Notes under the pieces: generated by a model
Seen by the model: only the letters and a program-made list of their open reading frames with translations
Database searches by the model: none
Told to the model about the DNA's origin: nothing
Origin: Eutreptiella sp. 'Long Island Sound 2002'
Taxonomy: Eukaryota; Protista; Euglenida
DNA length: 64,000 nt
Assembly (NCBI GenBank): GCA_964036045.1
Contig: OZ038379.1
Location: 58,404,001-58,468,000 of the forward strand
Reading direction: 5' to 3'
Made by a program: the position numbers and the translations under genes
Part shown: piece by piece, positions 1,110-60,233 of the stretch
Position numbering within the stretch: the first letter of the stretch is position 1
Layout of the letters: every line of letters begins with the position of its first letter

Positions 1110-1536
1110 AAACGACGCATGCCCGGCCCAAGGGCTAGTCATAGTATTAGAGCCAACTGTAGTTACCGGCACTAGACTTGCTGTCCAATTGGCACTCATT
1201 GCTTCATCTTTTCTGACGGGGGCACTTGATCGTGAAACACTGCACATGCTTAACAGGGCCAAAAGGCTCTCCGGCTACCACCTAGCAGAATGTTGGGCCG
1301 CACTCTTGGTTGAAGGTATGGCACGAGTTTTGGCAACTGGGCGAATAAGCTCGGCAAGGCTTGGCAGCGAGCTCCAGCCCCTCATTACCCACGGTCGCAG
1401 GATTGCAACCTGCCTCTCCGGCTGCAGCGCAGTCCAACTCTCTAGGGCCCACACCCACCCACTCACTCACCCTGCATACCCCTTCCATTCCGATGCCGCC
1501 ATGGTGGCTGTGGATCGGGGGCCTCCACGTCTTTGA
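1110..1536 (+). other. Unique island in the satellite with an open frame of unknown nature
   Basis: About 140 non-repetitive codons without a stop (DACPAQGLVIVLEPT...); no motif recognised. Confidence 0.25.
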
Positions 1537-2475
1537 TGGTGGCACTTGCGGCAGAGGGGAGACATTGGGGCATGGGACGGGGAGGGGGTGGCATGTGGCG
1601 CTGGGGTTCAGGTGTTCTCCGTGGACGGGGCCTGGGGTCGGCGGGGGGGGGGGGGGAGTTAGCCGGTGGGGCTGCCCATGTGGGGGCTTTGTGTCGCCCA
1701 TGTGGGTTTTGTGACCGTGCTGCCATCACCTACAGGCGCCCCATAGGCTGCGAGCACCAATGGCGCAAGACACCCCGTCCCTCTAGGCGGTGAGCCCTCA
1801 CCATTGGGGGCCCCCATCCCCCGCAGGCGGTTCTTGGGCTGCGACCACCGACTGAGCTAGATGCACCGTCCCCCGGCCCGTGGGCCCGCACCATTGGGGG
1901 CTGCCATCCCCTGCAGGTGCCCCATAGGCTGCGACCACGGAATGCGAAGGATTTCCCGCCCCCAACCGGCGAGCCCGCACCATTGCTGGCTGCCATCCCC
2001 CGCAGGCGCTCCTTTGGCTAGGACCACGGACCAAACTGGACTCCCCGTCCCCCGACACATCGGCTTGCATAATTGGGTAGTGCCGTCCCCCGCAGGCGCC
2101 CCTTTGGCGCCGCTGAATTTTGCGTTCCCCCAGCCCATGGGCCAACACCATTCGTGGCCGCCATCCCCTGCAGGCGCACCATAGGCTGCGACCGCAGAAT
2201 GCACAAGAATCCCCTTCCCCCGAGTTGGTGATCCCGCACCATTGCAGGCGGCCATCCCCCGCAAGCGCCCTTTTGGCTGCGACCACCAACTAAGCTTGAA
2301 TCCCCGTCCCCCCGGCCGTGGGCCCGCACCGTTGAGGGCTGCCATGCACCGCAGGCGCTCTTTTAGTTGCGAGCACGGACTGAACAGGACTCCCCATCCC
2401 CCTCGCCGGTGAGCCAGCACCATTGGTGCTGGCAAACCAGTCGGCACGGTCCCCCTCCACTTCAACCGCTAGTAG

Positions 2476-2649
2476 TCCATCTCTAACGGTGCAGCGGACG
2501 TCACATTCGCGGTCGGCACCGGGGTTGGGACATTCACGCTCACGGGGCAGATCGCCTTCACACTCCACATCAAAGCCGAGGCCCTAAAGAGGACGCGCTC
2601 CGAAGACTACGGCACACTCCCGTCAGAACGAGAAGGAGTGCAACACTAG
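2476..2649 (+). pseudogene. Exon-like fragment similar to the piggyBac passenger protein at 50756-51403
   Basis: After TAGTAG, reads SISNGAADVTFAVGTGVGTFTLTGQIAFTLHIKAEALKRTRSEDYGTLPSEREGVQH*. GTFTLTGQIAFTLHIKAEALKRTRS aligns ungapped with GKMSLSGTIYFTEDQKTGGLKRSIS (11/25 identical by eye). Confidence 0.45.
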
Positions 2650-4014
2650 CGTTTGACCGATTTGCCCGTCTTTGGCATTTGAAAGTCATTCGAGACATTT
2701 GGATGGGTTCCGCCCATGACTAAGGGTTGGCGTGAAACATGAGGTTGTGCAACATCGTGGGGGTGCAGTATGGTCCACAGAGGCAAGAACATTGTCAATG
2801 GGAGCAAAAAATCCCCAATTTATCCCTGCAAAGTGCGCGTTGTGCGCGCGCCGTGCCCGCGCTGTGCATGCTGGGCCCGCGCTGTGCACCCGCTGTGCAC
2901 AAACGCCCTCATGGGCCCGCACCGTTGGGGGATGCCATCCCACGCAGGCGCCCCTTCGGTTGCGACGACCAACTGAGCATGACTACCCGTCCCCCCAGTC
3001 GGTGAGCTTGCGCCAGTGGGGCTGGCGTCCCCCGCAAGCGCCCCTTCGGTGGCAACCACCGATTCATTTGGACTCCCCGTCCCCCTAGCCCGTGGGCCCC
3101 AGCCATTGGGGGCTACCATGCCCCGTAGGCGCCCCTTAGGTTGCGACCACAGACTGATCTGGAGTCCCTGTCCCCCTAGCCCATTGGCCCGCACCATTGG
3201 AGGCTACCCCTTAGGCTGCGACCACCGACTGGGCAAAACTCCCCGTCCCTCCAGCCCGTGGGCCCCCGGCTTTGGGGCCGATGTCCGACGCAGGCGCTCC
3301 TTTGGCGGTGACCACCGACTGCATAGGACTCCTCGTCCCCCCAGCCCATGGGCCGGCACCATTGGCGGCTGCCCCTTAGGTTGCAACCACCGACTAGGCA
3401 AGACTCCGCGTCCCCCAAGCCCGTGGGCCCCCGCTTTTGGTGCCGGTGTCTGACGTAGGCGCTCCGTAGGCTGCGACGGGCGACTGGGCAGGACTCCTCG
3501 TCCCCCGAGCCCATGGGCCGGACGGGGAGTTAGTCGGTGATCGTAGCCTAAGGCGCGTCTGCGGGGAATGGCATGCCCTTTTGGCGCAAGCCCACGGGCT
3601 AGGGGGACGGTGAGTCATGCCCAGTCTCTGGCCGTAGCCTAAGGAGCGACGGCGGGGATGGCAGCCCCCAATGGCCCGTGCCCACGGGCTGGAAGGACAA
3701 AGAGGACTACCCAGTCTGTCATCGCAGCCTACGGAGCGCCTACGTTGGACGGAAGCCCCAAAGGCGGGGGCCCACATGCTGGGCGGACGGGGAGTCCTGC
3801 CCAGTCGGTGGTCGCAGCCTAAGGGGCAGCCTCCAATGGCGCGGGGCCATGGGCTAGGAGGACGAGGAGTCAAGGTCAGTCCGTGGTCGCAGCCTAAGGG
3901 GCGCCTATGGCGGATGGTAGCCTCCAACAGTGCGGGCCCACGGGCCGGGGTGATGGGAAGTCTTGCCCATTTGGTAGTCGCAGCATAAGGAGCGACTGCA
4001 GGGGGATGGCACCC

Positions 4015-4170
4015 CCCCGCAGGCGGGGGCCTGGTCTTCGCGTCGATCTTATACTCGGGGAACAGCTGTTGAAGGGGCCCCAGCAGATCTGTGACCCACG
4101 CGCTTTCCTTCGCAACCGTCACAAACCGCTGGCCCGCCGCCTCTGGCCGCACCAGAGCCTCGCAGTGCAC
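4015..4170 (-). pseudogene. Isolated exon of an extended SDR / NAD-dependent epimerase (dihydroflavonol/cinnamoyl-CoA reductase-like), C-terminal part
   Basis: Pyrimidine tract plus AG precedes VHCEALVRPEAAGQRFVTVAKESAWVTDLLGPLQQLFPEYKIDAK. This fits the family pattern H..A...PEA.G.RF...L...FP.Y.I. It runs directly into satellite with no donor site. Confidence 0.62.
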
Positions 4171-6559
4171 CTTGGGTCAAGAGAGTGAAGTGCCGGAAAG
4201 GGCCCATGGGCTGGGGGGATGCGGAGTCGTGGCAAGGCAGTGGTCGGAGTCTAAGGGAGTGCCTGCGAGAGACGGCAGCCCCCCATGGTGCAGGCCCACG
4301 GGCCGGGAGCACGGGGAGTTGTTCGCAGTCGGCAGTCACAGCCTACAGAGCTCCCGCGGGGGATGGTAGCCCCCAATAGTTTGGGCTCAGGGGCTAGGGG
4401 GATTAGGGGTCGTATGCAGTCGGTGATCGCAGCCAAAGGAGCGCCTGCCAGGAATGGCAGCCCCCAACGGCGCGGACCCACGGGTTGGTTGGACGGGCAG
4501 TCCTGCCAAGTCGGTGGTCACAGCATACGGAGCGCCTGCGGAGGAGGGCAGCCCCCAACGGCCCGGGCCCGCGAGATTGCGTGTTGCCATACCCCTTAGG
4601 CGCTCCTTGGGTTGAGACGACCAACTGACTTCGAATCCCCGTCCCCTCCATACATCGGCTTGCGCATGTAGGGGCTGCCACCCCTCGCACGCGCTCGTTT
4701 GGCTCCGACCACCAACGACGTAGGAATCTCCATCCCTCCTTCCCGTGAGCCCACACCATTGGATGATGGCACCCTCTGCAGGCGCCCCTTTGGCGCCAAC
4801 CACCAACTCAGCTTGAAAACCCGTCCCCCCGGCCCGTGGGCCCGCGCCATTCAAGGCTCCCATCCCTTGCAGACGCCCCATAGGTTGTGACCCCAGAATG
4901 CTCATGACTAATAGTCCCCCGAACCCGTGATCCCGCACCATTGCGGGCTGCCATCCCCTACAGGCGCCCTTTTGGCTGCGACCACCAACTAAGCTTGAAT
5001 TTCCGTCCCCCCGGTCGTGGGCCCGCACCGTTGAGGGCTGCCATGCACCGCAAGCGCTCTTTTTGTTGCGAGCACGGACTGAACAGGACTCCCCGTCCCC
5101 CTAGGCGGTGAGCCAGCACCATTGGTGCTGCCAACAGCCACAAGTGCTCCTTTGGCTGCGACCACTGACTGAGTGGGACTCCCCGCCCCCCCCGGCCCGT
5201 GGGCCGGCGCCATTCGGGCTTGCCATCCCTTGCAGGCACCCCATAGGCCACGACAACGGAATGCGCAGTACTCCGCGTCCTGCCAGCTCCCACTGGCGTC
5301 TCCTGGTTTGCGACCACCAACTGAGCTAGAATCCCGGCCCCCCCCCCCCGTCCCATGAGCCCACACCATTGGGGGCTGCCATCCCCCGCAGGCACTCTTT
5401 TGGTTGCGACCAGTGATTGAGCAGGACTCCCCGGGCCCTCGGCCCCTGGGCCCCCGACATTGGCAGCGGCCGTGTCCCCCCCAAGCGCTGCGCAGTCGGC
5501 TATCAGGGACAAGGTAGGGCACCCCGTCCCCAGCCCATTAACTCAGGTCATTGGGGTGCCCTATAGGCTGCGACCACCGATGGTGCAGGACTCCCCGTCC
5601 CTCTAGGCGGTGAGCCCTCACCATTGGGGGCCCCCATCCCCCGCAGGCGGTTCTTGGGCTGCGACCACCGATTGAGCTAGATGCACCATCCCCCCGGCCC
5701 GTGGGCCTGCACCATTGCAGGCTGCCATCCCCTGCAGGTGCCCCATAGGCTGCGACCACGGAATGCGAAGGATTTCCCGCCCCCCAACCGGCGAGCCCGC
5801 ACCATTGCTGGCTGCCATCCCCCGCAGGCGCTCCTTTGGCTAGGACCACGGACCAAACCGGACTCCCCGTCCCCCGACACATTGGCTTGCATAATAGGGT
5901 AGTGCCGTCCCCCGCAGGCGCCCCTTTGGCGCCGCTAGGTTTTGCGTTCCCCTAGCCCATGGGCCAACACCATTCGTGGCCGCCATCCCCTGTAGGCGCA
6001 CCATAGGCTGCGACCGCGGAATGCACAAGACTCCCCTTCCCCCGAGTTGGTGATCCCGCACCATTGCAGGTTGCCATCCCCTACAGGCGCCCTTTTGGCT
6101 GCGACCACCAACTAAGCTTGAATCCCCGCCCCCCCGGCCGTGGGCCCGCACCGTTGAGGGCTGCCATGCACCGCAGGCGCTCTTTTGGTTGCCGGCACGG
6201 AATGAACAGGACTCCCCATCCTCCTAGCCAGTGAGCAAGCACCATTGGTGCTGCCATCGCCTACAAGTGCTCCTTTGGCTGCGACCACTGACTAAGCGGG
6301 ATTCCCCGCCCCCCCGGCCGGTGGGCCCGCGCCATTCGGTGTCCTTGGAGATGCCGATTTGGTCGGCGTCCCTAGGGGGTCGTGTGACCATTCCCAAGGC
6401 CTAGGCAGCCGGTACTAGGGGGCCGCGGGGTCCTGGGGGTTGGTGTTTAGCGCTAGAGCGCGCATACATCCGACACTGTTAGTACACCGCCGCTAGGGCA
6501 GTGCCCGGGCCTTGTCATAAGGAGCTTCGCACCCGGCACCCAGCCCATGGGTAGAGTTG

Positions 6560-20000: not shown

Positions 20001-23000
20001 GGGGGAGAAATCAGAAGTGGCCCACCTATGGGCAAAGTGGCTATGTCACCCCCTGCCGTCTCGGGGATCCCCACCGCTTCAGAGCGGGGGGGAAAATCAG
20101 AAGTGGCCCACAAGTGGGCAAAGTGGCTACATCACCCCTGCCGTCTCGGGGATCCCCACCGCTTCAGAGCGGGGGGGAAAATCAGAAGTGGCCCACTTGT
20201 GGGCAAAGTGGCTATGTCACCCCCTGCCGTCTCCGGGATCCCCACCGCTTCGAAGCGGGGGGGGAAATCAGAAGTGGCCCACTTGTGGGCAAAGTGGCTA
20301 TGTCACCCCTGCCGTCTCGGGGATCCCCACCACTTCAGAGCGGGGGGCAAAATCAGAAGTGGCCCACAAGTGGGCAGAGTGGCTACGTCACCCCTGCCGT
20401 CTCGGGGATCCCCACCGCTTCGGAGCGGGGAGGAAACTCAGAAGTAGCCCACAAGTGGGCAAAGTGGCTACGTCACCCCTGCCGTCTCGGGGATCCCCAC
20501 CGCTTCAGAGCGGGGGGGGAAAATCAGAAGTGGCCCACAAGTGGGCAAAGTGGCTACGTCACCCCTGCCGCCTCGGGGATCCCCACCGCTTGAGAGCGGG
20601 GGGGAAAATCAGAAGTGGCCCACTTGTGGGCAAAGTGGCTATGTCACCCCTGCCGTCTCGGGGATCCCCACCGCTTCAGAGCGGGGGGGGAAATCAGAAG
20701 TGGCCCACTTGTAGGCAAAGTGGCTACGTCACTCCTGCCGTCTCGGGGATCCCCACCGCTTCAGAGCGGGGGGGGAAATCAGAAGTGGCCCACTTGTGGG
20801 CAAAGTGGCTACGTCACCCCTGCCGTCTCGGGGATCCCCACCGCTTCAGAGCGCGGGGGGAAATCAGAAGTGGCCCACTTGTGGGCAAAGTGGCTACGTC
20901 ACTCCTGCCGTCTCGGGGATCCCCACCGCTTCAGAGCGGGGCATAAATCAGAAGTGGCCCACTTGTGGGCAAAGTGGCTACGTCACCCCTGCCGTCTCGG
21001 GGATCCCCACCGCTTCAGAGCGGGGGGGAGAATCAGAAGTGGCCCACAAGTGGGCAAAGTGGCTACGTCACCGCTGCTGTCTCGGGGATCCCCGGCGCTT
21101 CAGAGCGGGGGGGAAAATCAGAAGTGGCCCACTTGTAGGCAAAGTGGCTACGTCACCCCTGCCGTCTCTAGGATCCCCACCGCTTCAGAGCGGGGGGGGC
21201 GAAATCAGAAGTGGCCCACAAGTGGGCAAAGAGGCTACGTCACCCCTGCCGTCTCGGGGATCCCCACCGCTTCACAGTGGGGGGCAAAATCAGAAGTGGC
21301 CCACCGATTTCCCCCCCCGCTCTGAAGCGGTGGGGATCCCCGAGACGGCAGGGGTGACGTAGCCACTTTGCCCACAAGTGGGCCACTTCTGATTTTCCCC
21401 CCCCGCTTTGAAGCGGTGGGGATCCCCGAGACGGCAGGGGTGACGTAGCCACTTTGCCCACTTGTGGGCCACTTCTGATTTTCCCCCCCGCTCTGAAGCG
21501 GTGGGGATCCCGAGACGGCAGGGGTGGCGTAGCCACTTTGCCCACAAGTGGGCCACTTCTGATTTATGCCCCGCTCTGAAGCGGTGGGGATCCCCGAGAC
21601 GGCAGGAGTGACGTAGCCACTTTGCCCACAAGTGGGCCACTTCTGATTTCCCCCCCCGCTCTGAAGCGGTGGGGATCCCCGAGACGGCAGGGGTGACGTA
21701 GCCACTTTGCCCACTTGTGGGCCACTTCTGATTCCCCCCCCGCTCTGCAGCGGTGGGGATCCCCGAGACGGCAGGGGGTGACATAGCCACTTTGCCCATA
21801 GGTGGGCCACTTCTGATTTCCCCCCCCCCGCTCTGCAGCGGTGGGGATCCCCGAGACGGCAGGGGGTGACATAGCCACTTTGCCCACAAGTGGGCCACTT
21901 CTGATTTTCCCCCCCGCTCTGAAGCGGTGGGGATCCCCGAGACGGCAGGGGTGACGTAGCCACTTTGCCCACTTGTGGGCCACTTCTGATTTCCCCCCCC
22001 CGCTCTGCAGCGGTGGGGATCCCCGAGACGGCAGGGGTGACATAGCCACTTTGCCCACAAGTGGGCCACTTCTGATTTTGCCCCCCGCTCTGAAGCGGTG
22101 GGGATCCCCGAGACGGCAGGGGCGACGTAGCCACTTTGCCCACAAGTGGGCCACTTCTGATTTCCCCCCCCGCTCTGAAGCGGTGGGGATCCCCGAGACG
22201 GCAGGAGTGACGTAGCCACTTTGCCCACAAGTGGGCCACTTCTGATTTCCCCCCCGCTCTGAAGCGGTGGGGATCCCCGAGACGGCAGGGGTGACGTAGC
22301 CACTTTGCCCACTTGTGGGCCACTTCTGATTTCCCCCCCCCGCTCTGCAGCGGTGGGGATCCCCGAGACGGCAGGGGGTGACATAGCCACTTTGCCCATA
22401 GGTGGGCCACTTCTGATTTCCCCCCCCCCGCTCTGCAGCGGTGGGGATCCCCGAGACGGCAGGGGGTGACATAGCCACTTTGCCCACAAGTGGGCCACTT
22501 CTGATTTTCCCCCCGCTCTGAAGCGGTGGGGATCCCCGAGACGGCAGGGGTGACGTAGCCACTTTGCCCACTTGTGGGCCACTTCTGATTTCCCCCCCCG
22601 CTCTGCAGCGGTGGGGATCCCCGAGACGGCAGGGGTGACATAGCCACTTTGCCCACAAGTGGGCCACTTCTGATTTTGCCCCCCGCTCTGAAGCGGTGGG
22701 GATCCCCGAGACGGCAGGGGCGACGTAGCCACTTTGCCCACAAGTGGGCCACTTCTGATTTCCCCCCCGCTCTGAAGCGGTGGGGATCCCCGAGACGGCA
22801 GGAGTGACGTAGCCACTTTGCCCACAAGTGGGCCACTTCTGATTTCCCCCCCGCTCTGAAGCGGTGGGGATCCCCGAGACGGCAGGGGTGACGTAGCCAC
22901 TTTGCCCACTTGTGGGCCACTTCTGATTTCCCCCCCCCGCTCTGCAGCGGTGGGGATCCCCGAGACGGCAGGGGGTGACATAGCCACTTTGCCCATAGGT

Positions 23001-24643
23001 GGGCCACTTCTGATTTCCCCCCCCCGCTCTGCAGCGGTGGGGATCCCCGAGACGGCAGGGGGTGACATAGCCACTTTGCCCACAAGTGGGCCACTTCTGA
23101 TTTTCCCCCCCGCTCTGAAGCGGTGGGGATCCCCGAGACGGCAGGGGTGACGTAGCCACTTTGCCCACTTGTGGGCCACTTCTGATTTCCCCCCCCCGCT
23201 CTGCAGCGGTGGGGATCCCCGAGACGGCAGGGGTGACATAGCCACTTTGCCCACTTGTGGGCCACTTCTGATTTTGCCCCCCGCTCTGAAGCGGTGGGGA
23301 TCCCCGAGACGGCAGGGGCGACGTAGCCACTTTGCCCACAAGTGGGCCACTTCTGATTTCCCCCCCGCTCTGAAGCGGTGGGGATCCCCGAGACGGCAGG
23401 GGTGACGTAGCCACTTTGCCCACAAGTGGGCCACTTCTGATTTCCCCCCCCGCTCTGAAGCGGTGGGGATCCCCGAGACGGCAGGAGTGACGTAGCCACT
23501 TTGCCCACTTGTGGGCCACTTCTTATTTTCCCCCCCGCTCTCAAGCGGTGGGGATCCCCGAGACGGCAGGGGTGACGTAGCCACTTTGCCCACAAGTGGG
23601 CCACTTCTGATTTTCCCCCCCGCTCTGAAGCGGTGGGGATCCCCGAGATGGCAGGGGTGACGTAGCCACTTTGCCCACAAGTGGGCCACTTCTGATTTTC
23701 CCCCCCGCTCTGAAGCGGTGGGGATCCCCGAGACGGCAGGGGTGACGTAGCCACTCTGCCCACTTGTGGGCCACTTCTGATTTTGCTCCCCGCTCTGAAG
23801 TGGTGGGGATCCCCGAGACGGCAGGGTTGACATAGCCACTTTGCCCACAAGTGGGCCACTTCTGATTTCCCCCCCGCTTCGGAGCGGTGGGGATCCCGGA
23901 GACGGCAGGGGTGACATAGCCACTTTGCCCACAAGTGGGCCACTTCTGATTTCTCCCCGCGCTCTGAAGCGGTGGGGATCCCCGAGACGGCAGGGGTGAC
24001 GTAGCCACTTTGCCCACTTGTGGGCCACTTCTGATTTTGCCCCCCGCTCTGCAGCGGTGGGGATCCCCGAGACGGCAGGGGTGACGTAGCCACTTTGCCC
24101 ACAAGTGGGCCACTTCTGATTTTCCCCCCCGCTCTGAAGCGGTGGGGATCCCGAGACGGCAGGGGTGACGTAGCCACTTTGCCCACAAGTGGGCCACTTC
24201 TGATTTTGCCCCCCGCTCTGCAGCGGTGGGGATCCCCGAGACGGCAGGGGTGACATAGCCACTTTGCCCACAAGTGGGCCACTTCTGATTTCCCCCCCCC
24301 GCTCTGCAGCGGTGGGGATCCCCGAGACGGCAGGGGTGACGTAGCCACTTTGCCCACAAGTGGGCTACTTCTGATTTCCCCCCCCGCTCTGAAGCGGTGG
24401 GGATCCCCGAGACGGCAGGGGTGACATAGCCACTTTGCCCACAAGTGGGCCACTTCTGATTTTCCCCCCCGCTCCGCAGCGGTGGGGATCCCTGAGACGG
24501 CAGGGGTGACATAGCCACTTTGCCCACAAGTGGGCCACTTCTGATTTGCCCCCCCGCTCTGAAGCGGTGGGGATCCCCGAGACGGCAGGGGGTGACATAG
24601 CCACTTTGCCCATAGGTGGGCCACTTCTGATTTTTCCCCCCGC
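20001..24643. repeat. ~85-bp hairpin-rich satellite, forward to 21304 then reverse
   Basis: Unit GAAATCAGAAGTGGCCCACTTGTGGGCAAAGTGGCTACGTCACCCCTGCCGTCTCGGGGATCCCCACCGCTTCAGAGCGGGGGGG. Orientation flips at ...GGCCCAC|CGATTTCCCC (~21305). Confidence 0.95.
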
Positions 24644-24887
24644 TCCCCCCCCCCCCCCCAAACTGCCCCTCCCAACCCCGAGGGGTTGCCCCCCCCCCCG
24701 CCCCCCGTGCTCGCTCATAATTCAATGGGAGCCAGTGCTGCTCAGGCACTTGCTGCACAGAAGGAAGCACGTTCACTTAAGACCTCTTTTGCGTGTTGAT
24801 TCATTTGGAGCCAGCGGCCTCAGACTTTTTGCTGGGTACATGTTTGTAAATTGGTTGCTCTTTACAGATTGTGATTGTTTTTGCCAC

Positions 24888-25087: not shown

Positions 25088-28000
25088 CAGACCCATTCAT
25101 GGCATGTACCATCCGCTACCCCACACTGGGAACTAACACCCCAAAACCACAAAAGAGGGCGGGTGGGGGATGCATCATGCGGTACCTCAAAAAGGGCGGA
25201 GGGCCTGACCCGGGGATGCCTGATGCGGTACCTGGCACAGGCTCAGTGCACTTCTCAGTGGCCCGTCATGCGTGACACAGTGTCGTTGCATTGGCACACA
25301 ACGTCCCCAACAGACCTTCGTCGGAACACCAAAGCTCTGCCTGGCCACTGCGAATTGCCTGTGCCTTTATTCCTATTGCTGTGCCTTTATTCCTATCGCT
25401 GCTAACACCCTTTGTCTCCTGTGCCCCCACAGCCAGCTTCCTGCCATTACCTCTCATGCCCCTTTCTGCCGCCTAGTCCCACTTTTTGCCATGTGCCTTC
25501 CAAAACGTACACCACCGAGACCCTGTTGCCCGTGGCAAAAACAATCACAATCTGTAAAGAGCAACCAATTTACAAACATGTACCCAGCAAAAAGTCTGAG
25601 GCCGCTGGCTCCAAATGAATCAACACGCAAAAGAGGTCTTAAGTGAACGTGCTTCCTTCTGTGCAGCAAGTGCCTGAGCAGCACTGGCTCCCATTGAATT
25701 ATGAGCGAGCACGGGGGCGGGGGGGGGGGCAACCCCTCGGGGGGAGAAAATCAGAAGTGGCCCACCTATGGGCAAAGTGGCTATGTCACCCCCTGCCGTC
25801 TCGGGGATCCCCACCGCTTCAGAGCGGGGGGGAAAATCAGAAGTGGCCCACAAGTGGGCAAAGTGGCTACATCACCCCTGCCGTCTCGGGGATCCCCACC
25901 GCTTCAGAGCGGGGGGAAAATCAGAAGTGGCCCACTTGTGGGCAAAGTGGCTATGTCACCCCCTGCCGTCTCCGGGATCCCCACCGCTTCGAAGCGGGGG
26001 GGGAAATCAGAAGTGGCCCACTTGTGGGCAAAGTGGCTATGTCACCCCTGCCGTCTCGGGGATCCCCACCACTTCAGAGCGGGGGCAAAATCAGAAGTGG
26101 CCCACAAGTGGGCAGAGTGGCTACGTCACCCCTGCCGTCTCGGGGATCCCCACCGCTTCGGAGCGGGGAGGAAACTCAGAAGTAGCCCACAAGTGGGCAA
26201 AGTGGCTACGTCACCCCTGCCGTCTCGGGGATCCCCACCGCTTCAGAGCGGGGGGGGAAAATCAGAAGTGGCCCACAAGTGGGCAAAGTGGCTACGTCAC
26301 CCCTGCCGCCTCGGGGATCCCCACCGCTTGAGAGCGGGGGGGAAAATCAGAAGTGGCCCACTTGTGGGCAAAGTGGCTATGTCACCCCTGCCGTCTCGGG
26401 GATCCCCACCGCTTCAGAGCGGGGGGGGAAATCAGAAGTGGCCCACTTGTAGGCAAAGTGGCTACGTCACTCCTGCCGTCTCGGGGATCCCCACCGCTTC
26501 AGAGCGGGGGGGGAAATCAGAAGTGGCCCCACTTGTGGGCAAAGTGGCTACGTCACCCCTGCCGTCTCGGGATCCCCACCGCTTCAGAGCGCGGGGGGAA
26601 ATCAGAAGTGGCCCACTTGTGGGCAAAGTGGCTACGTCACTCCTGCCGTCTCGGGGATCCCCACCGCTTCAGAGCGGGGCATAAATCAGAAGTGGCCCAC
26701 TTGTGGGCAAAGTGGCTACGTCACCCCTGCCGTCTCGGGATCCCCACCGCTTCAGAGCGGGGGGGAGAATCAGAAGTGGCCCACAAGTGGGCAAAGTGGC
26801 TACGTCACCGCTGCTGTCTCGGGGATCCCCGGCGCTTCAGAGCGGGGGGGGAAAATCAGAAGTGGCCCACTTGTAGGCAAAGTGGCTACGTCACCCCTGC
26901 CGTCTCTAGGATCCCCACCGCTTCAGAGCGGGGGGGGCGAAATCAGAAGTGGCCCACAAGTGGGCAAAGAGGCTACGTCACCCCTGCCGTCTCGGGGATC
27001 CCCACCGCTTCAACAGTGGGGGGCAAAATCAGAAGTGGCCCACCGATTTCCCCCCCCGCTCTGAAGCGGTGGGGATCCCGAGACGGCAGGGGTGACGTAG
27101 CCACTTTGCCACAAGTGGGCCACTTCTGATTTTCCCCCCCGCTTTGAAGCGGTGGGGATCCCCGAGACGGCAGGGGTGACGTAGCCACTTTGCCCACTTG
27201 TGGGCCACTTCTGATTTTCCCCCCCGCTCTGAAGCGGTGGGGATCCCCGAGACGGCAGGGGTGGCGTAGCCACTTTGCCCACAAGTGGGCCACTTCTGAT
27301 TTATGCCCCGCTCTGAAGCGGTGGGGATCCCCGAGACGGCAGGAGTGACGTAGCCACTTTGCCCACAAGTGGGCCACTTCTGATTTCCCCCCCCGCTCTG
27401 AAGCGGTGGGGATCCCCGAGACGGCAGGGGTGACGTAGCCACTTTGCCCACTTGTGGGCCACTTCTGATTCCCCCCCCCGCTCTGCAGCGGTGGGGATCC
27501 CCGAGACGGCAGGGGGTGACATAGCCACTTTGCCCATAGGTGGGCCACTTCTGATTTCCCCCCCCCCGCTCTGCAGCGGTGGGGATCCCCGAGACGGCAG
27601 GGGGTGACATAGCCACTTTGCCCACAAGTGGGCCACTTCTGATTTTCCCCCCCCGCTCTGAAGCGGTGGGGATCCCCGAGACGGCAGGGGTGACGTAGCC
27701 ACTTTGCCCACTTGTGGGCCACTTCTGATTTCCCCCCCCCGCTCTGCAGCGGTGGGGATCCCCGAGACGGCAGGGGTGACATAGCCACTTTGCCCACAAG
27801 TGGGCCACTTCTGATTTTGCCCCCCGCTCTGAAGCGGTGGGGATCCCCGAGACGGCAGGGGCGACGTAGCCACTTTGCCCACAAGTGGGCCACTTCTGAT
27901 TTCCCCCCCCGCTCTGAAGCGGTGGGGATCCCCGAGACGGCAGGAGTGACGTAGCCACTTTGCCCACAAGTGGGCCACTTCTGATTTCCCCCCCGCTCTG

Positions 28001-30634
28001 AAGCGGTGGGGATCCCCGAGACGGCAGGGGTGACGTAGCCACTTTGCCCACTTGTGGGCCACTTCTGATTTCCCCCCCCCGCTCTGCAGCGGTGGGGATC
28101 CCCGAGACGGCAGGGGGTGACATAGCCACTTTGCCCATAGGTGGGCCACTTCTGATTTCCCCCCCCCCGCTCTGCAGCGGTGGGGATCCCCGAGACGGCA
28201 GGGGGTGACATAGCCACTTTGCCCACAAGTGGGCCACTTCTGATTTTCCCCCCCGCTCTGAAGCGGTGGGGATCCCCGAGACGGCAGGGGTGACGTAGCC
28301 ACTTTGCCCACTTGTGGGCCACTTCTGATTTCCCCCCCCCGCTCTGCAGCGGTGGGGATCCCCGAGACGGCAGGGGTGACATAGCCACTTTGCCCACAAG
28401 TGGGCCACTTCTGATTTTGCCCCCCGCTCTGAAGCGGTGGGGATCCCCGAGACGGCAGGGGCGACGTAGCCACTTTGCCCACAAGTGGGCCACTTCTGAT
28501 TTCCCCCCCCGCTCTGAAGCGGTGGGGATCCCCGAGACGGCAGGAGTGACGTAGCCACTTTGCCCACAAGTGGGCCACTTCTGATTTCCCCCCCGCTCTG
28601 AAGCGGTGGGGATCCCCGAGACGGCAGGGGTGACGTAGCCACTTTGCCCACTTGTGGGCCACTTCTGATTTCCCCCCCCCGCTCTGCAGCGGTGGGGATC
28701 CCCGAGACGGCAGGGGGTGACATAGCCACTTTGCCCATAGGTGGGCCACTTCTGATTTCCCCCCCCCGCTCTGCAGCGGTGGGGATCCCCGAGACGGCAG
28801 GGGGTGACATAGCCACTTTGCCCACAAGTGGGCCACTTCTGATTTTCCCCCCCGCTCTGAAGCGGTGGGGATCCCCGAGACGGCAGGGGTGACGTAGCCA
28901 CTTTGCCCACTTGTGGGCCACTTCTGATTTCCCCCCCCCGCTCTGCAGCGGTGGGGATCCCCGAGACGGCAGGGGTGACATAGCCACTTTGCCCACTTGT
29001 GGGCCACTTCTGATTTTGCCCCCCGCTCTGAAGCGGTGGGGATCCCCGAGACGGCAGGGGCGACGTAGCCACTTTGCCCACAAGTGGGCCACTTCTGATT
29101 TCCCCCCCCGCTCTGAAGCGGTGGGGATCCCCGAGACGGCAGGGGTGACGTAGCCACTTTGCCCACAAGTGGGCCACTTCTGATTTCCCCCCCCGCTCTG
29201 AAGCGGTGGGGATCCCCGAGACGGCAGGAGTGACGTAGCCACTTTGCCCACTTGTGGGCCACTTCTTATTTTCCCCCCCGCTCTCAAGCGGTGGGGATCC
29301 CCGAGACGGCAGGGGTGACGTAGCCACTTTGCCCACAAGTGGGCCACTTCTGATTTTCCCCCCCGCTCTGAAGCGGTGGGGATCCCCGAGATGGCAGGGG
29401 TGACGTAGCCACTTTGCCCACAAGTGGGCCACTTCTGATTTTCCCCCCCGCTCTGAAGCGGTGGGGATCCCCGAGACGGCAGGGGTGACGTAGCCACTCT
29501 GCCCACTTGTGGGCCACTTCTGATTTTGCTCCCCGCTCTGAAGTGGTGGGGATCCCCGAGACGGCAGGGTTGACATAGCCACTTTGCCCACAAGTGGGCC
29601 ACTTCTGATTTCCCCCCCCGCTTCGGAGCGGTGGGGATCCCGGAGACGGCAGGGGTGACATAGCCACTTTGCCCACAAGTGGGCCACTTCTGATTTCTCC
29701 CCGCGCTCTGAAGCGGTGGGGATCCCCGAGACGGCAGGGGTGACGTAGCCACTTTGCCCACTTGTGGGCCACTTCTGATTTTGCCCCCCGCTCTGCAGCG
29801 GTGGGGATCCCCGAGACGGCAGGGGTGACGTAGCCACTTTGCCCACAAGTGGGCCACTTCTGATTTTCCCCCCCGCTCTGAAGCGGTGGGGATCCCCGAG
29901 ACGGCAGGGGTGACGTAGCCACTTTGCCCACAAGTGGGCCACTTCTGATTTTGCCCCCCGCTCTGCAGCGGTGGGGATCCCCGAGACGGCAGGGGTGACA
30001 TAGCCACTTTGCCCACAAGTGGGCCACTTCTGATTTCCCCCCCCCGCTCTGCAGCGGTGGGGATCCCCGAGACGGCAGGGGTGACGTAGCCACTTTGCCC
30101 ACAAGTGGGCTACTTCTGATTTCCCCCCCCGCTCTGAAGCGGTGGGGATCCCCGAGACGGCAGGGGTGACATAGCCACTTTGCCCACAAGTGGGCCACTT
30201 CTGATTTTCCCCCCCGCTCCGCAGCGGTGGGGATCCCTGAGACGGCAGGGGTGACATAGCCACTTTGCCCACAAGTGGGCCACTTCTGATTTGCCCCCCC
30301 GCTCTGAAGCGGTGGGGATCCCCGAGACGGCAGGGGGTGACATAGCCACTTTGCCCATAGGTGGGCCACTTCTGATTTTTCCCCCCGCTCCCCCCCCCCC
30401 CCCCAAACTGCCCCTCCCAACCCCGAGGGGTTGCCCCCCCCCCCGCCCCCCGTGCTCGCTCATAATTCAATGGGAGCCAGTGCTGCTCAGGCACTTGCTG
30501 CACAGAAGGAAGCACGTTCACTTAAGACCTCTTTTGCGTGTTGATTCATTTGGAGCCAGCGGCCTCAGACTTTTTGCTGGGTACATGTTTGTAAATTGGT
30601 TGCTCTTTACAGATTGTGATTGTTTTTGCCACGG
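25088..30634. repeat. Direct near-identical copy of 19349-24887 across the gap (offset ~5.74 kb), probably an unmerged contig overlap
   Basis: Same unique flank, same satellite variant order and same fold junction (~27044). Many differences are 1-bp indels in homopolymers. Confidence 0.85.
25738..30388. repeat. Second copy of the ~85-bp satellite, forward then reverse
   Basis: Same unit; orientation flip at ~27044. Confidence 0.95.
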
Positions 30635-48278: not shown

Positions 48279-48957
48279 CATGCATTTCTTCTTTTTAGTA
48301 AAATTGGAAAAGATTTTGTGGTAATTCGTGTACAAAAACATTGTCATGCCGTGTAATGGTTTTTGTGGCAAGTCGTGTCCATAAAAATCGTCAGGTCGTG
48401 TAGGTTTATTTTTTTTGCGTTAAACGCGAGACCAAAAAAATCGTGAAATCGTGTAATTTATTTTTCTTTGCGGTAATGTGCGAAACAGGTCTACATGTCT
48501 GACCGGGAAAAAAAAATCACCTAGCATGACAATTTTTGTTGTTGCATGCATTTACAGCAAAAATTCAATACACGAATTGAGACATACATATTCCTTTGGC
48601 TACCATACGCGAATATTTTCACAACCGGTCCACCGGTCTTCGTTAACTCACCGTTTCGACTAGGCAAAATCACCAACTGTTCAGTTGAGACCGTTTCGCG
48701 CCACTTTAGCTTTCTGTAGCGAACCGGTTAGTTCGGGGAGACCGGTCGGACCGGTCCGACCGGTCTTTGCAAACTGAACGGACCGGACCATTTTAGCACA
48801 CTTTAGCACACTTTGGAGCACTTGGTGATGCGTGTGTAGTGTGTGTGTCCGCATGTGTGTGTTGTGTGTGTGCGTGTGCTGTGTTGTGCGTGTTCACACC
48901 TTTGCACAGGCATTGCAATGCATGGGAGTCAATCCTCACAAGACATCTATTCATGGT

Positions 48958-50319
48958 TCATTCATGATGGTCCGCAAAGCATTCAACGTGTAGATAGCAC
49001 CCACATGCTTTGCACTTGTATCGGGTGGTGCCCATCCCACAATGTACACAAAAGCCCCGCTTCCCAACCACTATTGGTACATGCTTGTCCACCACCTGAG
49101 TTTGCCTTGCCGGAAACATGTATCTCATCAACCTCCATTGCCAGTCAAACATTGTTTCACCCCCCGGACTAAGGCGCAACGCTTGGCATGACGTAAATGC
49201 ATTTGTTGCCGCTATCCTTAACACCATCCCCCCAAGTGCCTTCCACCATGATTGAAACCGGTGCTCTTCCCGGTGTTGTAAGCACATTTGGTTAAACGTA
49301 TCCACCCCCGGGGCAAACCTACGGTAGTTGGCAATTATCCCCGGTAGGTGGTATCGTCCACTTCGGTGTGGGAGCGAACCTCCGGTTAAGCAATTGGTTA
49401 GTAGTGGTACCACCTTTGCCGGCTTGCGCCCCACTTTGGGGTTTTTGTATACCGAGAGTGCATACCGATGTTCCTTGTGCACCACCGTGTTCACATCCCC
49501 CGGGTCTAATCCAACGTTCCCATCTTGCACCAAAGCACTTGTGGAAGTGAGCATCAAGAACGGACGCTCTTGTGCACTTAGCATCGCCGCCGCATCATGA
49601 GACCCAAAGAATGAATCCGCCACAAGCACCTTTCCGGGTGGAGTCACATCATTCCAAAGTTGCACAATCTCAAACGCATTGTAGTGGCCTGCAAACCGGC
49701 TCCGGGACTCTGGACCCACACGAGGGGCTGCACCACGGTACAAATACACATGCCAAATGTAATGGCTTTGTGCGTCGCACAACGCGTACAGTTTCACACC
49801 GGTGCTGTGAGGCTTGCGCGGTATGAACTGGCGGATCACGAACAACCCCTTGTGGGGGACCACGGTCTCATCCCCGCACACCATGTCACCTAGTTCCCAT
49901 CCGCCTTGCCAGTGCATCGTGCACAACTCAATCAACGCATCCGCATCCGGGTCCGCAAGTCGCTGCAGCACATAAAACTGTCGCCTGCTAGGAAACAGTT
50001 CCGCCATGTATGCATTGTAGTGCATACTCTCTTTGTCCCACACATCATCTATTCTGCGCGGCTGCAGCATGCCCAAGCCAACTCGAAAGAGCACGTACCG
50101 CGGAAGAAGGTCCACAAGGTCTAACCGGTTGGCCTCTTCCAAACACAGCGTCATGGCCTCCAAAATTGGCCGGAACATAAAGTTCCAGACGGCAACGGGG
50201 GTCTTGCCATCCTCGGTGCCCTCCAAGAGGCTGCGCCCTTTGCGGAGTTCATCTCCAAAATCCCATTGGGCCTCTAGGGGGGCCAGGGGTCTTGGTTCCC
50301 ATGGTGTAGCAGCAGGCAT
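48958..50319 (-). CDS. piggyBac-like transposase (DDE_Tnp_1_7 type), 453 aa from the first ATG
   Basis: Uninterrupted ORF with CGDETVV, IPRKPHSTGVKLYALCD, VADSFFGS, YRRFAPGVDTFNQ and a C-terminal CxxC...CxxC...H/C domain. ATG at 50319 follows TTTTTTTTCAG|GC. Confidence 0.93.
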   Translation of the reverse strand: MPAATPWEPRPLAPLEAQWDFGDELRKGRSLLEGTEDGKTPVAVWNFMFRPILEAMTLCLEEANRLDLVDLLPRYVLFRVGLGMLQPRRIDDVWDKESMHYNAYMAELFPSRRQFYVLQRLADPDADALIELCTMHWQGGWELGDMVCGDETVVPHKGLFVIRQFIPRKPHSTGVKLYALCDAQSHYIWHVYLYRGAAPRVGPESRSRFAGHYNAFEIVQLWNDVTPPGKVLVADSFFGSHDAAAMLSAQERPFLMLTSTSALVQDGNVGLDPGDVNTVVHKEHRYALSVYKNPKVGRKPAKVVPLLTNCLTGGSLPHRSGRYHLPGIIANYRRFAPGVDTFNQMCLQHREEHRFQSWWKALGGMVLRIAATNAFTSCQALRLSPGGETMFDWQWRLMRYMFPARQTQVVDKHVPIVVGKRGFCVHCGMGTTRYKCKACGCYLHVECFADHHE

Positions 50320-50371
50320 GCCTGAAAAAAAAACAGAATACAAGCTTTTGCTGACCAGTCTTGGCAAACTA

Positions 50372-50570
50372 CCCTAAACCGTTCAGACCGCTTCACTTTA
50401 GATCACTTTGTCCACAGACCGGTTGGACCGGTCTTTGCAAACTACTCTAAACCGTTCGGACCGGTCCACTTTAGCTCACTTTGTCCAGAGACCGGTCAGA
50501 CCGGTCTTTGCAAACTACTCTAAACCGTTCGGACCGCTTCACTTTAGCACACTTTAGTACACTTTAGACT
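50372..50570. repeat. 73-bp internal tandem repeat of the piggyBac element, upstream of the transposase
   Basis: TAAACCGTTC at 50375, 50448 and 50521; each unit has the core GACCGGT(N)nGACCGGTCTTTGCAAAC and ACTTTAGCAC-like motifs. Confidence 0.85.
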
Positions 50571-50755
50571 TTCTTTGCTCCCAAACCAAACACGCAGCAG
50601 AAATCATGGAATCATGCAATCCTGGAATCATGTCGCTGGTGTCCCATCAAGCACATGTCTGGCACACGTCTGGCACACCGGCCACACAGGACCGAAACAG
50701 TTCGTCGATAAAATCAAAAGGGAATAGCAAATAGCAAAAGCAAATAGAAAATGAG

Positions 50756-51403
50756 TTACTCATCCTCATTATCCTCATTATCCTTCTTCTCTTCCCCGGT
50801 CTTCTTGTTGCGGGCCTCGAGCTGCAGCGCGAGTCGCGCCTGTTGTGCGGCGAAGGCCGGGGTGATTTTCATCCCCGGAATCCCGGTAGCAGCAGCAGCG
50901 GAAGCCGCCTGCAGCTGAAGTGCCTGGGTGGAGGGCTCCTGCAGAAAAAGGAAGTAAAGTGGTTTCAACCGAACGGACCGGTACACTTCGTGACACTTCG
51001 TTCAAGGACCGGTCGGACCGGTCTTTGCAAACTGTCGTAAACCGTTCGGACCGGTACACTTTAGCACACTTCACACGAAGACCGGTCGGACCGGTCGTTG
51101 CAAACTGTCGTAAACCGTTCGGACCGGTCCACTTTAGCACACGGTGACGAAGTCAAGCTCGCCCTTGCTGATGCTGCGCTTCAAGCCCCCGGTCTTCTGG
51201 TCCTCCGTGAAGTAGATTGTCCCGGATAGGGACATTTTACCGGACGCCTGCGACTCGCACGTGCCGGTGTAGCGGCCGCCGTGCGAGCCCTTCAGCAGCA
51301 GCACCACCCGGTCTCCGGCCCGGACCTTCTTGAAGGCCGTGGGCACGGGCGTCTCGGCGTCCTTCACGCCGGGGATCTTCGTGCCGGGGCCTGAAATCGG
51401 CAT
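50756..51403 (-). CDS. Two-exon passenger gene inside the piggyBac element; 147-aa protein with a predicted SH3/KOW-like beta-barrel and an Ala-rich, charged tail
   Basis: Exons 51143-51403 and 50756-50938 splice in phase 0 (ACC|gtgtgc...ttctgcag|GAG): ...KKVRAGDRVVLLLKGSHGGRYTGTC...KGELDFVT|EPSTQ...EDNEDE*. Strong G/C third positions. The start is uncertain because an AG acceptor also exists at 51391-51392. Confidence 0.75.
50939..51142. repeat. Intron of the passenger gene composed of the same 73-bp repeat
   Basis: TAAACCGTTC at 51038 and 51111; the GT donor lies inside the GTGTGCTAAAGT repeat motif. Confidence 0.85.
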
Positions 51404-52069
51404 TAAAGAAGACTAAGCAACAAAGCAGGGAAGAGCCGTCTGACCGGTCCTGTGAAAAGGCAGCAGGAAGTAGGGGACCAGGAGCGAGGTTCGGAAGACC
51501 GGTCTGACCGGTCTGCGTGAAACTGTTTGAACCGATCTATTTTCATGCTAATGGTGCATCCCACCCATCATGCATCGTTGAAACACCCAAGAGGACATGG
51601 GAAGCAAAGTCTGTGTATGTGTGTGTGGTTTGTGCATGGTGTGTGGTGGCGTGCATGCTGCAACGAGCGCGCAAAGGTAGGTTTGGGAGGCAAGTGTAAC
51701 AAAGTGCTCCAAAGTGTACCGAAGTGGTCCGGTCCGTTCGGTTTGCAAAGACCGGTCCCACCGGTCTCTGAAACTGGTCTTACTGTTTTTCTCTAAAATA
51801 CTATTGAGTCTAAGAAAACCACCAAAACCATCATTTCCTCCACGTTCAAAAACCCTTGACCCAATCCTTTGCCAGAAAGTGATAATTTTCCCCACAAGAC
51901 CAGACCGGTCCTCCGTCCGGTCTGGTAGCCAAAGGAATATATACTAAGTATATCTGTATGGGCATGTCGTGTGCACCTTTCGGGCAACCGTTAGGGTTGT
52001 GCACCTTGATGCGCAAGACCCACATAACAAGCAAAAGGTGTCTCGCTCTGCTATTTGATGGTTAGGCTA

Positions 52070-57000: not shown

Positions 57001-60000
57001 AAAATCACCACCATATATAGTGAAAAAATCTGTATCCAAGAGAAAGGGTATAGTCCAATCTGATGTGACACGGAGTTCACGTGGCTCACCACCTCATTTC
57101 AAGTAAACATTGATCAGTTGCATCTTTTTTGATGATATGGTTGCACATACCATGTGCTCGGTAGTTTGGTTCCAAATGGACCTCCAAAACCACAATTTGT
57201 TGTGTCCTTCGCACCAAAATACAAGCACCTGCTGAGTTTCTGTTCGGTGACTTATAAAAATTGGCATATAGTGGATGAAAAATGAAGTCCTCTGGCATCT
57301 TGCCAATTTCTTGTAACATGAGAGCGGCCGGGTATCCGGTTTGCTTAATAACAACATGCAGAGCACGGATTTTTGATTGCACAGAGACTTGGGTATTCAA
57401 ATAGAGTACCTGTAAGGCTGACGTTGGTGAAGTTGCTCGTTCACTCATAGTCTTAGTAGGGAGGGGTACATGTGCTGGAAATCTGTGCAATGCATTAGGA
57501 ATGCGTGTGGGTATCTGTATTATCCTTCCCAGGAATTTTTTCATTGTTTTCATCTTGAAATTTGCATACAGCAGAGTTTGACTCTCCTCGGATGTTGGAC
57601 GTATGTGTACTGTGTGATGTGCAAAGAATGCATTATGTAACAAGATGGAATGTTTTTCAGGGAGCATGACTGGACCATATCGCATGCGTTTGGGAATGGC
57701 CATGGTTGTGGCATGGCCCTTGACTTGGCAGACAAAGATCTGCTCTGCCCATTGACTGAGAAGAGGAGAAAAGACTGTATCTATAGTGATGTACTGGACA
57801 TGCATCATCGAGGGTAGCACATTTGTGAGTGTCGGAAGTTCCAAGGGGGGTTCTGTATGCCTGGTGCATTCTATTCCTTCAAAACATAAACCCCATTGCT
57901 CACCTTGTTTCAGTTGAGCTCACAGATATCTTCGTATCATGTCTACTAGAATCGCGGGTGGGAAGGGACTCGGATCCATGTTTTTAGACAGGGGTCACCA
58001 GTTCCATTCACAGTCCCCTCCCCATCCTTGCCGATCCGGACCATTCTGCCAGGTCTATGCAAGTCTCGGGGTTTGATATATTTGTGTAGGATTGGGGGGT
58101 TGGGATTGAGATCCTGGAGTGTATTGGGTCGGGGGTGCTGAGTGTGTGTGTTGCGGGGTCACATCCGGCCTTTCTTTGCTTGTCTTGCGCTTTCTTCTTG
58201 ATCGTGATCTGGATCGTAACTGTGATCTTTTGTGTCTTCTTTGCTCCCGTCTTTCTCGTGACCCCTTGCGTTTGTCCCTGTCTGCAGAGCTGTCACTGCT
58301 TGCTGAGGAGGTACTTCTTGATCTTGACCGTTTGTGATGCTTGTGCTTCCTTCCTATGCTCTCTTTCTGTGTTTCCTTAGCCGGAGTTCGGGTTTTTTCT
58401 GTGATACCAGGTACCTAGAGGGTCCATGGTTGTCGCTTCGCTTTTTCCGGTTTACCCGCCATCCGGACGGATTGATTGCACCGGGAAACTCAGCCAATTT
58501 TTTTCCTTCTTCTGCAACACCAAGAAAAGTGAATGATTTTGGTGTCTTAACACGTCATCTCGGATGGAACACACGTGGTTCCTAAAAATGGGACGCAATG
58601 TTGTGCCTAGAATGCGTGCTGTGATAGGGGTTTGTGGTGGATCATCATATGCTGACCATCCAACCAAAATACTGATGGGGTATTTCGCCGGATCTGTGGA
58701 TGCAGGACTCGGTGCAGTGTGTGATGAAGTTGAAGATGTGGTGGGATCCCTGACTTCTGTCTTAATTGAGTCCCGTTTTGGGGTCGGAGGGTTTCCAGAA
58801 ACCAATGAATGACTTTTTTTATGGAATCTGTCAATTCCATGGACTCGAACTGACTCCATTGAGCATGAAGATCTGAATGAGGAAATACTGATATATGTAT
58901 ACTATGGGTATACAAGTGCATGTGAACACTTCTTGCTTGCTGAACACTGCGTTCACTGGACTAATTGTTTATCCAAATAAGAAAGCGTTGCATTACATCC
59001 GAAGACGTGACCCGGTCTGTCCTGCTTGTTACAGAGGGGTTAGCTCCTGATGCGGTGTCTCGATCTGATCGTCTTTCCTTTTACCTGTGTATAAGTTTTT
59101 GGTGGGGATTCTGGCAAAAAATTCAAAAGATTTCCACTGGTATCCATTCTTCGTTCCTACATGTTGAGTGTTGTCAACAATGGTTGTAAATCTTTCACTC
59201 TACCATTGACTGCCAAAAAGGTTGCAAAAATAGGTAACATGCTTAAGTAATGCTTGTGCATGGGGGGAGCTTGGGTTACATGAGGTGGTAGGTAAGGATC
59301 AATGTATTGAGGCACCGCATCTGGAGGAGGACCTTTCCATTCATGCCACTTCTGAACAAGTGAAATCAAATGGGGCATGGTAGAAGCGAGATTAGTGATG
59401 GCGTGATAATCTTTGGTCGCGGACAAAAGCAGAGCCTTGTTTCTCCATTTTTGAACTTCCTGTGAGACAATTTCCATTTGCTGTCGATGTGCTTGTGCCT
59501 GCTTGCGATTCTTGCGATTCTCGTTTTGCACCCGTTCCAATTCTGCTCGAGAAACCGAATCGATAGCAGCAAACAAGCTCATCGCTGAATGTGACCTCAA
59601 GGCTGGCATTGATTCATCATCCACCGGTATGATAAGAGATAGATTTGCTGACGGCTGAGAGAGCAAGTTGATGTGATCCGATGACATTGGGTGTGCATTG
59701 TCTGGAACCATGAGTGCATATGTTGGAGCTATGATCCATGAGATTGCTCCCGCTCCGTGGATCCGGTCGGGGTCAATGGCTGTGTTCACAAAGACAATGG
59801 AGTGCATGAGCTGTTCCTTGGCATTATCTATCGAGATGGATTGTATCTTTCCTTTCAATTTGTGGAGAGTCCTGAGATGCGGCAGAGCTATGTGGTCAGC
59901 AAGCCATGACAAAATATGCAAACTCAGCTGATGGTGATCCTTTGCGGTCATATTCGATGTGGTCTTCGCCGGAAGCAAATTTGGTAGAGCAAGGATGTGT

Positions 60001-60233
60001 TCAAGAATCTGCTTGTGACCATGCTTTTGCCACTTTGTCCATATCTTCCGCTCATATTGCGGGAGATAGTCTCTCATCGGGTCATACGTTTGTTATTTCA
60101 TCACTGTTGCTGAAACCTTATTCATGTCCGCATCCGGCGGTTTCAGGTGCTTCTGCAAGAAAGTTTTGATGTCCTTGTTCGCAATTGCACGATATGTGGG
60201 ATCCCACTGATGAACAAGTGGTTGTATTTCCAT
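54067..60233 (-). mobile_element. Decayed APE-type (L1/Tx1-like) non-LTR retrotransposon with ORF1 and ORF2
   Basis: ORF1 from ~60233 includes the 306-aa ORF at 59157-60077 and an RS/K-rich stretch at 58170-58380. ORF2 starts at ~57448 with YLNTQ, LQEIG, INVY, GGDFQA, PTW...LDHFL, SNHTPI. RT remnants at 55260-56070 include GLQPGGPL. The C-terminal part (54067-54730) has YLQYGIATISD and CLMCGKKGETPHF. Many stops and frameshifts. Confidence 0.78.

Follow-up and report, generated by a model that had tools for sequence, protein, structure and literature searches.

In a 64,000-nucleotide stretch of contig OZ038379.1 from the euglenid Eutreptiella sp. 'Long Island Sound 2002' (forward-strand positions 58,404,001 to 58,468,000; hereafter the window, whose own numbering is used), we analyzed a transposon that occupies positions 48588-51940. 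This segment is very probably an internally deleted copy of a piggyBac-superfamily element, a cut-and-paste transposon of 5,311 bp that integrates at, and duplicates, the tetranucleotide ATAT, a trait that would be common to a whole clade, and whose full-length form carries an accessory gene under purifying selection. The 14-bp terminal inverted repeat (TIR) TCCTTTGGCTACCA has exactly two occurrences in the window, one on each strand (48592-48605 on the plus strand and 51923-51936 on the minus strand), while the chance expectation is about 0.5 matches even with two mismatches permitted. An inner inverted repeat, with 76-nt arms that are 83% complementary, lies about 160 bp inside each element end. 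The motif GACCGGTC-N-GACCGGTC, which forms the core of a 73-bp repeat, is present eight times in the element, and the rest of the 64 kb contains no copy (0 expected). Both the perfect 14-bp ends flanked by ATAT and the internal inverted repeat had been noticed in the first-pass annotation of this DNA, and both are found here at exact coordinates. The features of the element are as follows.

48588-48591: ATAT target-site duplication (TSD), transposase-side flank; ATAT is at the same place in 13/13 family copies
48592-48605, plus strand: 14-bp TIR TCCTTTGGCTACCA, end next to the transposase gene; perfect pair with 51923-51936
48749-48824: subterminal repeat with GACCGGTC pairs, inverted partner of 51691-51766
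48958-50319, minus strand: transposase coding sequence, 453 aa, intact, with DDD triad and Cys/His-rich C-terminal tail
50320-50335, minus strand: pyrimidine tract followed by an acceptor-like CAG, which precedes the transposase ATG by 2 nt; putative function
50353-50566, minus strand: array of about three copies of the 73-bp GACCGGTC repeat, between both genes
50756-50938, minus strand: predicted final accessory exon, with 60 codons and a stop
50939-51142, minus strand: remnant of the predicted last accessory intron, built of 73-bp repeats (array 50967-51142); its 5' edge, 51142, is the deletion junction
51143-51403, minus strand: truncated accessory exon 1, first 87 of ~301 codons, with most of the predicted Sm-like barrel
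51691-51766: subterminal repeat, inverted partner of 48749-48824
51923-51936, minus strand: 14-bp TIR, end next to the accessory gene
51937-51940: ATAT target-site duplication, accessory-side flank

ATAT flanks in the family and its relatives

To the window copy we added 12 further copies (L001-L012) from the public metagenome assembly ENA ERZ25074135, the source of the closest proteins, whose contigs reach 6 Mb and which therefore includes a eukaryote. All 12 end in these 14-bp repeats and are flanked by ATAT at either end. With two complete elements of sister families, the comparison comprises 15 elements (13 family copies and 2 sister-family elements), and ATAT is present on both flanks in 15/15 of them, that is, in 13/13 and 2/2, respectively. 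The base outward of ATAT varies between copies, and no direct repeat extends beyond ATAT at any of the 15 sites. The wider site context is weakly Y-ATAT-R, with a pyrimidine at -1 in 13 of the 15 and a purine at +1 in 11. The sister families come from the same assembly and are represented by L013, L015 and L014, the transposases of which are 64%, 43% and 37% identical to that of the window and the ends of which read TCCTTTGGCTACA, TCCTTTATCT and TCCTTTATCTAGGG, respectively; these ends, too, are flanked by ATAT.

Two observations bear on the origin of the flanking ATAT. The L014 element interrupts a tandem array with a unit of ~190 bp, and two uninterrupted units of this array are 97-98% identical to the flanks of the element. 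These units read ...gtgctcc ATAT ccatatgg... and thus represent a paralogous empty site with a single ATAT, which argues that ATAT is duplicated target DNA and not part of the element. In L008 and L010, the end of another family adjoins an end of the window family with one ATAT in common, and this is the expected product of insertion into the ATAT that flanks a resident element. The altered target choice proposed in the first-pass annotation is upheld by the 15 elements and by the paralogous empty site; the contrary outcomes that it had named, namely variable or TTAA flanks in other copies, or an empty site that lacks a single ATAT, were not found in this material.

Two further features of these loci should be mentioned. 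The host tandem repeat around the L014 element extends over L014 600-1772 and 6871-7450, with units of ~190 bp that are 85-98% identical. In addition, the right ends of two families, at L005 5717-6090 and L013 6970-7942, lie at the same ATAT of a homologous flank that is 93% identical over ~370 bp. The L013 flank carries a 620-bp insertion, and the transposase DNA of L005 and L013 is 66% identical. This common site might be a repeated sequence that was hit twice, or one element might have replaced the other.

More distant relatives were sought by an exhaustive profile-free search, which yielded 1,314 transposase relatives, 45 of them below 1e-30. Three relatives with 23-28% identity to the window transposase, from unrelated datasets, have ATAT-flanked CC(C)TT ends.

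L018, Logan run: 28% identity to the window transposase; ATAT followed by CCTTTACAGCACCAAC, 16-bp TIR
L021, JGI metagenome: 25% identity; ATAT followed by CCCTTAAACGCCGAAA, 16-bp TIR
L020, JGI metagenome: 24% identity; ATAT followed by CCCTTAG

As the L020 and L021 contigs differ in G+C content (34% and 49%, respectively), they should stem from different organisms. Another relative, P0216, which was tried as an outgroup with known ends, gave no clear TIR. Judged from these flanks, ATAT targeting appears as the trait of a clade that includes both the sister families and the distant relatives.

Transposase, master element and age of the family

The minus-strand open reading frame (ORF) 48958-50367 has 469 aa when counted from a TTG and 453 aa when counted from the ATG at 50319. 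Its product matches the Pfam family DDE_Tnp_1_7 (PF13843) with an E-value of 3.1e-21 (76.5 bits, cut-off 22.4) and the solved piggyBac transposase of Trichoplusia ni (T. ni; PDB 6x67) with an E-value of 1.6e-9, and its Atlas neighbours are all DDE_Tnp_1_7. In the alignment, the catalytic D268, D346 and D447 of the T. ni enzyme have D150, D235 and D340 as their counterparts. These three are invariant among 18 aligned relatives, as are C423, C426, C435, C438, H443, C446 and H451 (query numbering) of the C-terminal tail. For this Cys/His tail, the Pfam scan of the transposase gave only a weak C1_1 match (E 0.017) and no zf-Tnp_2 match. The clade has the motif RKPHxTGxK where T. ni has NKPSKYGIK, and its counterpart of T. 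ni Y283 is a Phe, located in the motif RQFIPRKPH. The transposase begins ~119 residues later than the T. ni enzyme and thus lacks the acidic N-terminal region of the latter. The uninterrupted 453-aa transposase with three Asp motifs and a Cys-rich tail, as described in the first-pass annotation, is therefore borne out by Pfam, by the alignment to T. ni and by the 18 relatives.

Because of this transposase homology, we place the element in the piggyBac superfamily, an assignment made by sequence comparison. The TTAA duplication that serves as a criterion of the superfamily is replaced by ATAT, and the element is thus a member by transposase homology that falls outside the 'TTAA-specific' definition. 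The features that define PIF/Harbinger elements (DDE_Tnp_4, a Myb-like second protein and a 3-bp TSD) are absent, with no such Pfam match on either gene and a TSD of 4 bp. Members of the superfamily are further characterised by short TIRs of 12-19 bp with a conserved initial C. Here the TIR is perfect over 14 bp; the families of this genome start with TCC, and the distant ATAT-flanked relatives start with CCTTT or CCCTT.

The full-length form of the element, referred to here as the master, is the 5,311-bp copy at L011 418-5728, to which the copies in L004, L007, L008 and L012 are 98.7-99.9% identical. The window element, at 3,345 bp, matches master 1-795 with its positions 1-795 and master 2545-5311 with its positions 795-3345, at ~97.5% identity. 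It therefore lacks 1.75 kb (master 796-2544), with the junction at window position 51142. The first-pass annotation had taken the element for an intact two-gene transposon: the transposase and both ends are indeed intact, but the element as a whole is a 3.35-kb deletion derivative of the 5.31-kb master. Other copies have different internal deletions with a junction overlap of 0-6 bp, and the deletion derivatives L005 and L009 are 99.9-100% identical to the master elsewhere. Such varied deletions are what recent cut-and-paste activity, followed by abortive gap repair, would typically leave behind.

One 453-aa transposase variant is encoded identically on 12 contigs, and P0053 of the ENA assembly is identical to the window transposase ORF. 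Between the window and master copies, the ratio of nonsynonymous to synonymous substitution rates (dN/dS) of the transposase is 0.10. As the transposase is identical on 12 contigs and the full-length copies are 99.6-99.9% identical, the family appears to be young, in agreement with the first-pass annotation, and it is probably active. At L012 5729-9362, a tandem duplication with a period of 3,311 bp follows the full-length copy, in which the 3' 1,477 bp of the element and 1.8 kb of flank are repeated, the repeated flank being 100% identical; this could be a rearrangement or an assembly artefact.

The accessory gene

In the master, the transposase is preceded, on its own strand, by an ATG-initiated ORF of 306 codons, with CAG/GTTTGT as the exon-1 donor. 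Further open segments follow, and an exon model derived from reading frames and GT..AG sites gives ~5 exons with ~575 aa in total, the introns of which hold the 73-bp repeat. In the window, the second reading frame comprises 51403-51143 and 50938-50756, which are in frame and joined by GT..AG. The deletion fuses exon-1 codon 87 to the last intron, so that the last barrel strand (see below) and ~430 residues are gone, and the remaining product of 87+60 codons is probably not functional. The second spliced gene reported in the first-pass annotation can thus be read in the window as two in-frame exons, but it is the truncated remnant of a larger accessory gene. Another ORF in the window, 59157-60077, equals accessory exon 1 in length (306 aa) and was rejected as unrelated.

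The accessory gene has no Pfam family beyond low-complexity matches and, specifically, no Pfam LSM match. Its homologues go down to 46% identity and have conserved blocks; homologue searches with both accessory proteins returned only family members from the same assembly. In comparisons between subfamilies, accessory exon 1 has a dN/dS of 0.07-0.12 and the transposase one of 0.06-0.16; these low values point to both being real genes under selection. In AlphaFold2 models, accessory residues 10-100 form a small beta-barrel with a pLDDT of 73-86, and the remainder is disordered or helical. The top Foldseek matches of the barrel are Sm/LSm proteins (E 1.6e-4 to 1e-3, TM-score by target up to 0.75), and VIA likewise ranks Sm/LSm first with a Z of 8.7, a level that VIA calls common; the fold used for comparison is a bent barrel of five strands and ~70 residues. 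The accessory protein is most likely an orphan that combines an N-terminal Sm-like beta-barrel with a disordered acidic/basic stretch and a tail that forms a coiled coil.

The sister-family elements L014 and L015 have upstream ORFs of their own, which are homologous to each other (E 3e-15). With the accessory gene of the window family, they have only a weak H-[VY]-x-Q-C-L motif in common (E 0.086). Profile comparison by hhalign aligned only a 24-column motif (E 0.0023, 13% probability), and tblastn of the accessory exons against the sister-family loci gave no matches. In L015 (2554-4500) and L014 (1773-5000), family-specific short repeats are found near the ends and in and around the upstream accessory ORFs, and mirror the repeat-filled introns of the window family.

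Alternative readings and known systems

In the mechanism that we propose, the DDD transposase with its Cys-rich C-terminal tail would most likely recognise the 14-bp ends together with the family-specific GACCGGTC repeats, and the element would be excised and reinserted by the piggyBac mechanism. Integration would take place at the palindromic ATAT, in a weak Y-ATAT-R context, with ATAT being duplicated where canonical elements duplicate TTAA. As ATAT shares the palindromic nature of TTAA, pairing of the 4-nt donor overhangs should remain possible, and excision would be expected to be seamless. The master carries, upstream and in the same orientation, the predicted ~5-exon gene under purifying selection; in the window copy, the 1.75-kb deletion leaves a stump of this gene together with an intact transposase and both ends.

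Some points weigh against this reading and need to be considered along with it. Transposition, excision and splicing are predictions from the sequence. A search of the JGI metagenomes for the empty site of the window family (left flank plus 0-8 nt plus right flank) gave 0 matches. Support from RNA is weak, with 13-16% of the transposase words present in two estuary metatranscriptomes and 6-7% of the words of the non-coding flanks likewise present in comparable runs. The Sm-like assignment of the accessory barrel rests on borderline scores for a small fold, and the homology between the accessory gene of the window family and those of the sister families is not significant. Finally, a 4-bp ATAT duplication and a 2-bp TA duplication within A-TA-T, in which the element ends in T...A, cannot be told apart from the sequences alone.

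This last point leads to an improbable alternative, in which A-TA-T is recognised, the stagger is 2 bp and only the central TA is duplicated, the element ending in T...A (TTCCTTT...AAAGGAA). Domesticated piggyBac relatives of ciliates act at TA-centred sites, which counts in its favour, and, ATAT being palindromic, it predicts the same filled and empty strings as a duplication of all four bases. It would, however, have the distant relatives begin with TCCTTT or TCCCTT rather than with the canonical CC(C)TT, and the strand-transfer complex of piggyBac fixes a 4-nt stagger by the geometry of its active site (PMC7351741). Given the homology with this strand-transfer geometry, we consider a 4-bp duplication to be much more likely than a 2-bp one. 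The opposite shift of the boundary would make ATAT part of the element, with 18-bp inverted ends (ATATTCC...GGAATAT) and either no duplication at all or one lost by mutation. The inverted repeat does run through ATAT, by palindromy, and the only empty site is that of a sister family, with none from the window family. Nonetheless, the intact repeat units paralogous to the sister-family insertion keep one ATAT, adjoining ends of different families have one ATAT and not two, and no direct repeat reaches past ATAT at the 15 sites, so that this version is highly improbable.

A duplicated ATAT target, which we prefer to both of these boundaries, leaves room for different relations between the two genes. 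They could form a single transcription unit, in which alternative splicing joins exon 1 with the remaining accessory exons in one product and with the transposase exon in the other. In that case, a ~755-aa fusion would be the active transposase, and the accessory protein would be its splice partner. The TnpA and TnpD proteins of En/Spm are a precedent for alternatively spliced partners. The exon-1 donor is in phase 1, and 2 nt separate the pyrimidine tract and its CAG acceptor from the transposase ATG, so that G+GC is followed by the ATG in frame, although such a fit of phases arises by chance in one of three cases. The N-terminus of T. ni piggyBac has ~119 acidic and disordered residues (PMC7351741) with no counterpart in the 453-aa transposase, and exon 1 encodes an acidic tract. 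On the other hand, the proposal is drawn from splice-site sequence, the sister families have no evident equivalent of the acceptor, and the window copy has no exon-1 donor and yet keeps its transposase ORF intact. We thus regard a single unit as possible but doubtful. The broadest version of our proposal is one that we put forward only tentatively: a widespread, undescribed piggyBac clade would have switched from obligatory TTAA to ATAT and, in its members in this genome, alternative splicing of a common first exon would give rise to both the transposase and an Sm-like accessory protein.

As for known systems, a 2017 survey of 157 piggyBac-like elements gave TTAA as the target, with rare other flanks, including ATAT, in single copies that were put down to mutation (Bouallegue et al. 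2017, PMC5381638), and CsuPLE1 of Chilo suppressalis has ATAT at 2/21 sites (PMC4273485). These elements resemble ours in having ATAT beside piggyBac ends. There, however, ATAT is rare, whereas here it is the only target, in 15/15 elements and in the distant relatives. Searches of the open full-text literature gave no ATAT-specific piggyBac lineage, such as the group mentioned in the first-pass annotation, with Repbase and Dfam being outside the search and prior annotation there being possible. Canonical elements, including T. ni piggyBac (IFP2), share with the window family the DDE_Tnp_1_7 domain, the DDD triad, a Cys-rich C-terminal tail, TIRs of 13-16 bp that start with C/T-C-C-T-T and a palindromic 4-bp target of A and T only. 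In contrast to T. ni piggyBac, the window family targets ATAT and not TTAA, its TIR starts with T and not C, its transposase is without the ~119-residue acidic N-terminus, and it has an extra upstream multi-exon gene, with 73-bp repeats in the introns and between the genes.

Of accessory proteins, a DEDDh nuclease has been mentioned for piggyBac (PMC3627910), but none like that of the window family. En/Spm (CACTA) and PIF/Harbinger elements are similar in encoding a second protein beside the transposase and in their subterminal repeat arrays, and En/Spm perhaps also in deriving both products from a single, alternatively spliced unit, as proposed for the window family. Their transposases, however, belong to unrelated superfamilies, the accessory protein described here has neither a Myb/SANT nor a TnpA-like domain, and the TSD is 4 bp rather than 3 bp. 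Sola2 elements have 4-bp AT-rich TSDs (ATAT, AAAT or ATTT; PMC3627910) and thus include ATAT, but they have a transposase of a different family, and their TSD varies while that of the window family is invariant.

By cryo-electron microscopy, the choice of TTAA has been traced to the conformation that the target takes up when melted into single strands and to a hydrogen bond within the strand, T0-A3, in which no other base can stand in for T0 (PMC7351741). As TTAA specificity is treated as a hallmark of piggyBac, a natural and apparently recently active clade that uses ATAT exclusively would directly test this T0-A3 model. Such a clade points to residues that set the choice of the tetranucleotide and could yield a second transposon tool with seamless excision and a different target. 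The conserved orphan accessory gene, together with introns made of the element's own repeats, would be an unusual architecture for the superfamily.

Elsewhere in the window, TIR-like strings at 160-6284 (TCCTTTGGCTGCGA and similar) were rejected as related ends, since their flanks are GCGC or GTGC and they belong to a GC-rich repeat. This repeated region has a G+C content of 64-66% and contains seven near-copies of TCCTTTGGCT(G/A)(C/G)GA, with GCGC or GTGC as their flanks. Segments of 64% G+C that are ~5.7 kb apart hold a pair of similar minus-strand ORFs of ~1,150-1,180 aa, at 21235-24675 and 26973-30521, and a different large mobile element, present in two copies, may account for them.

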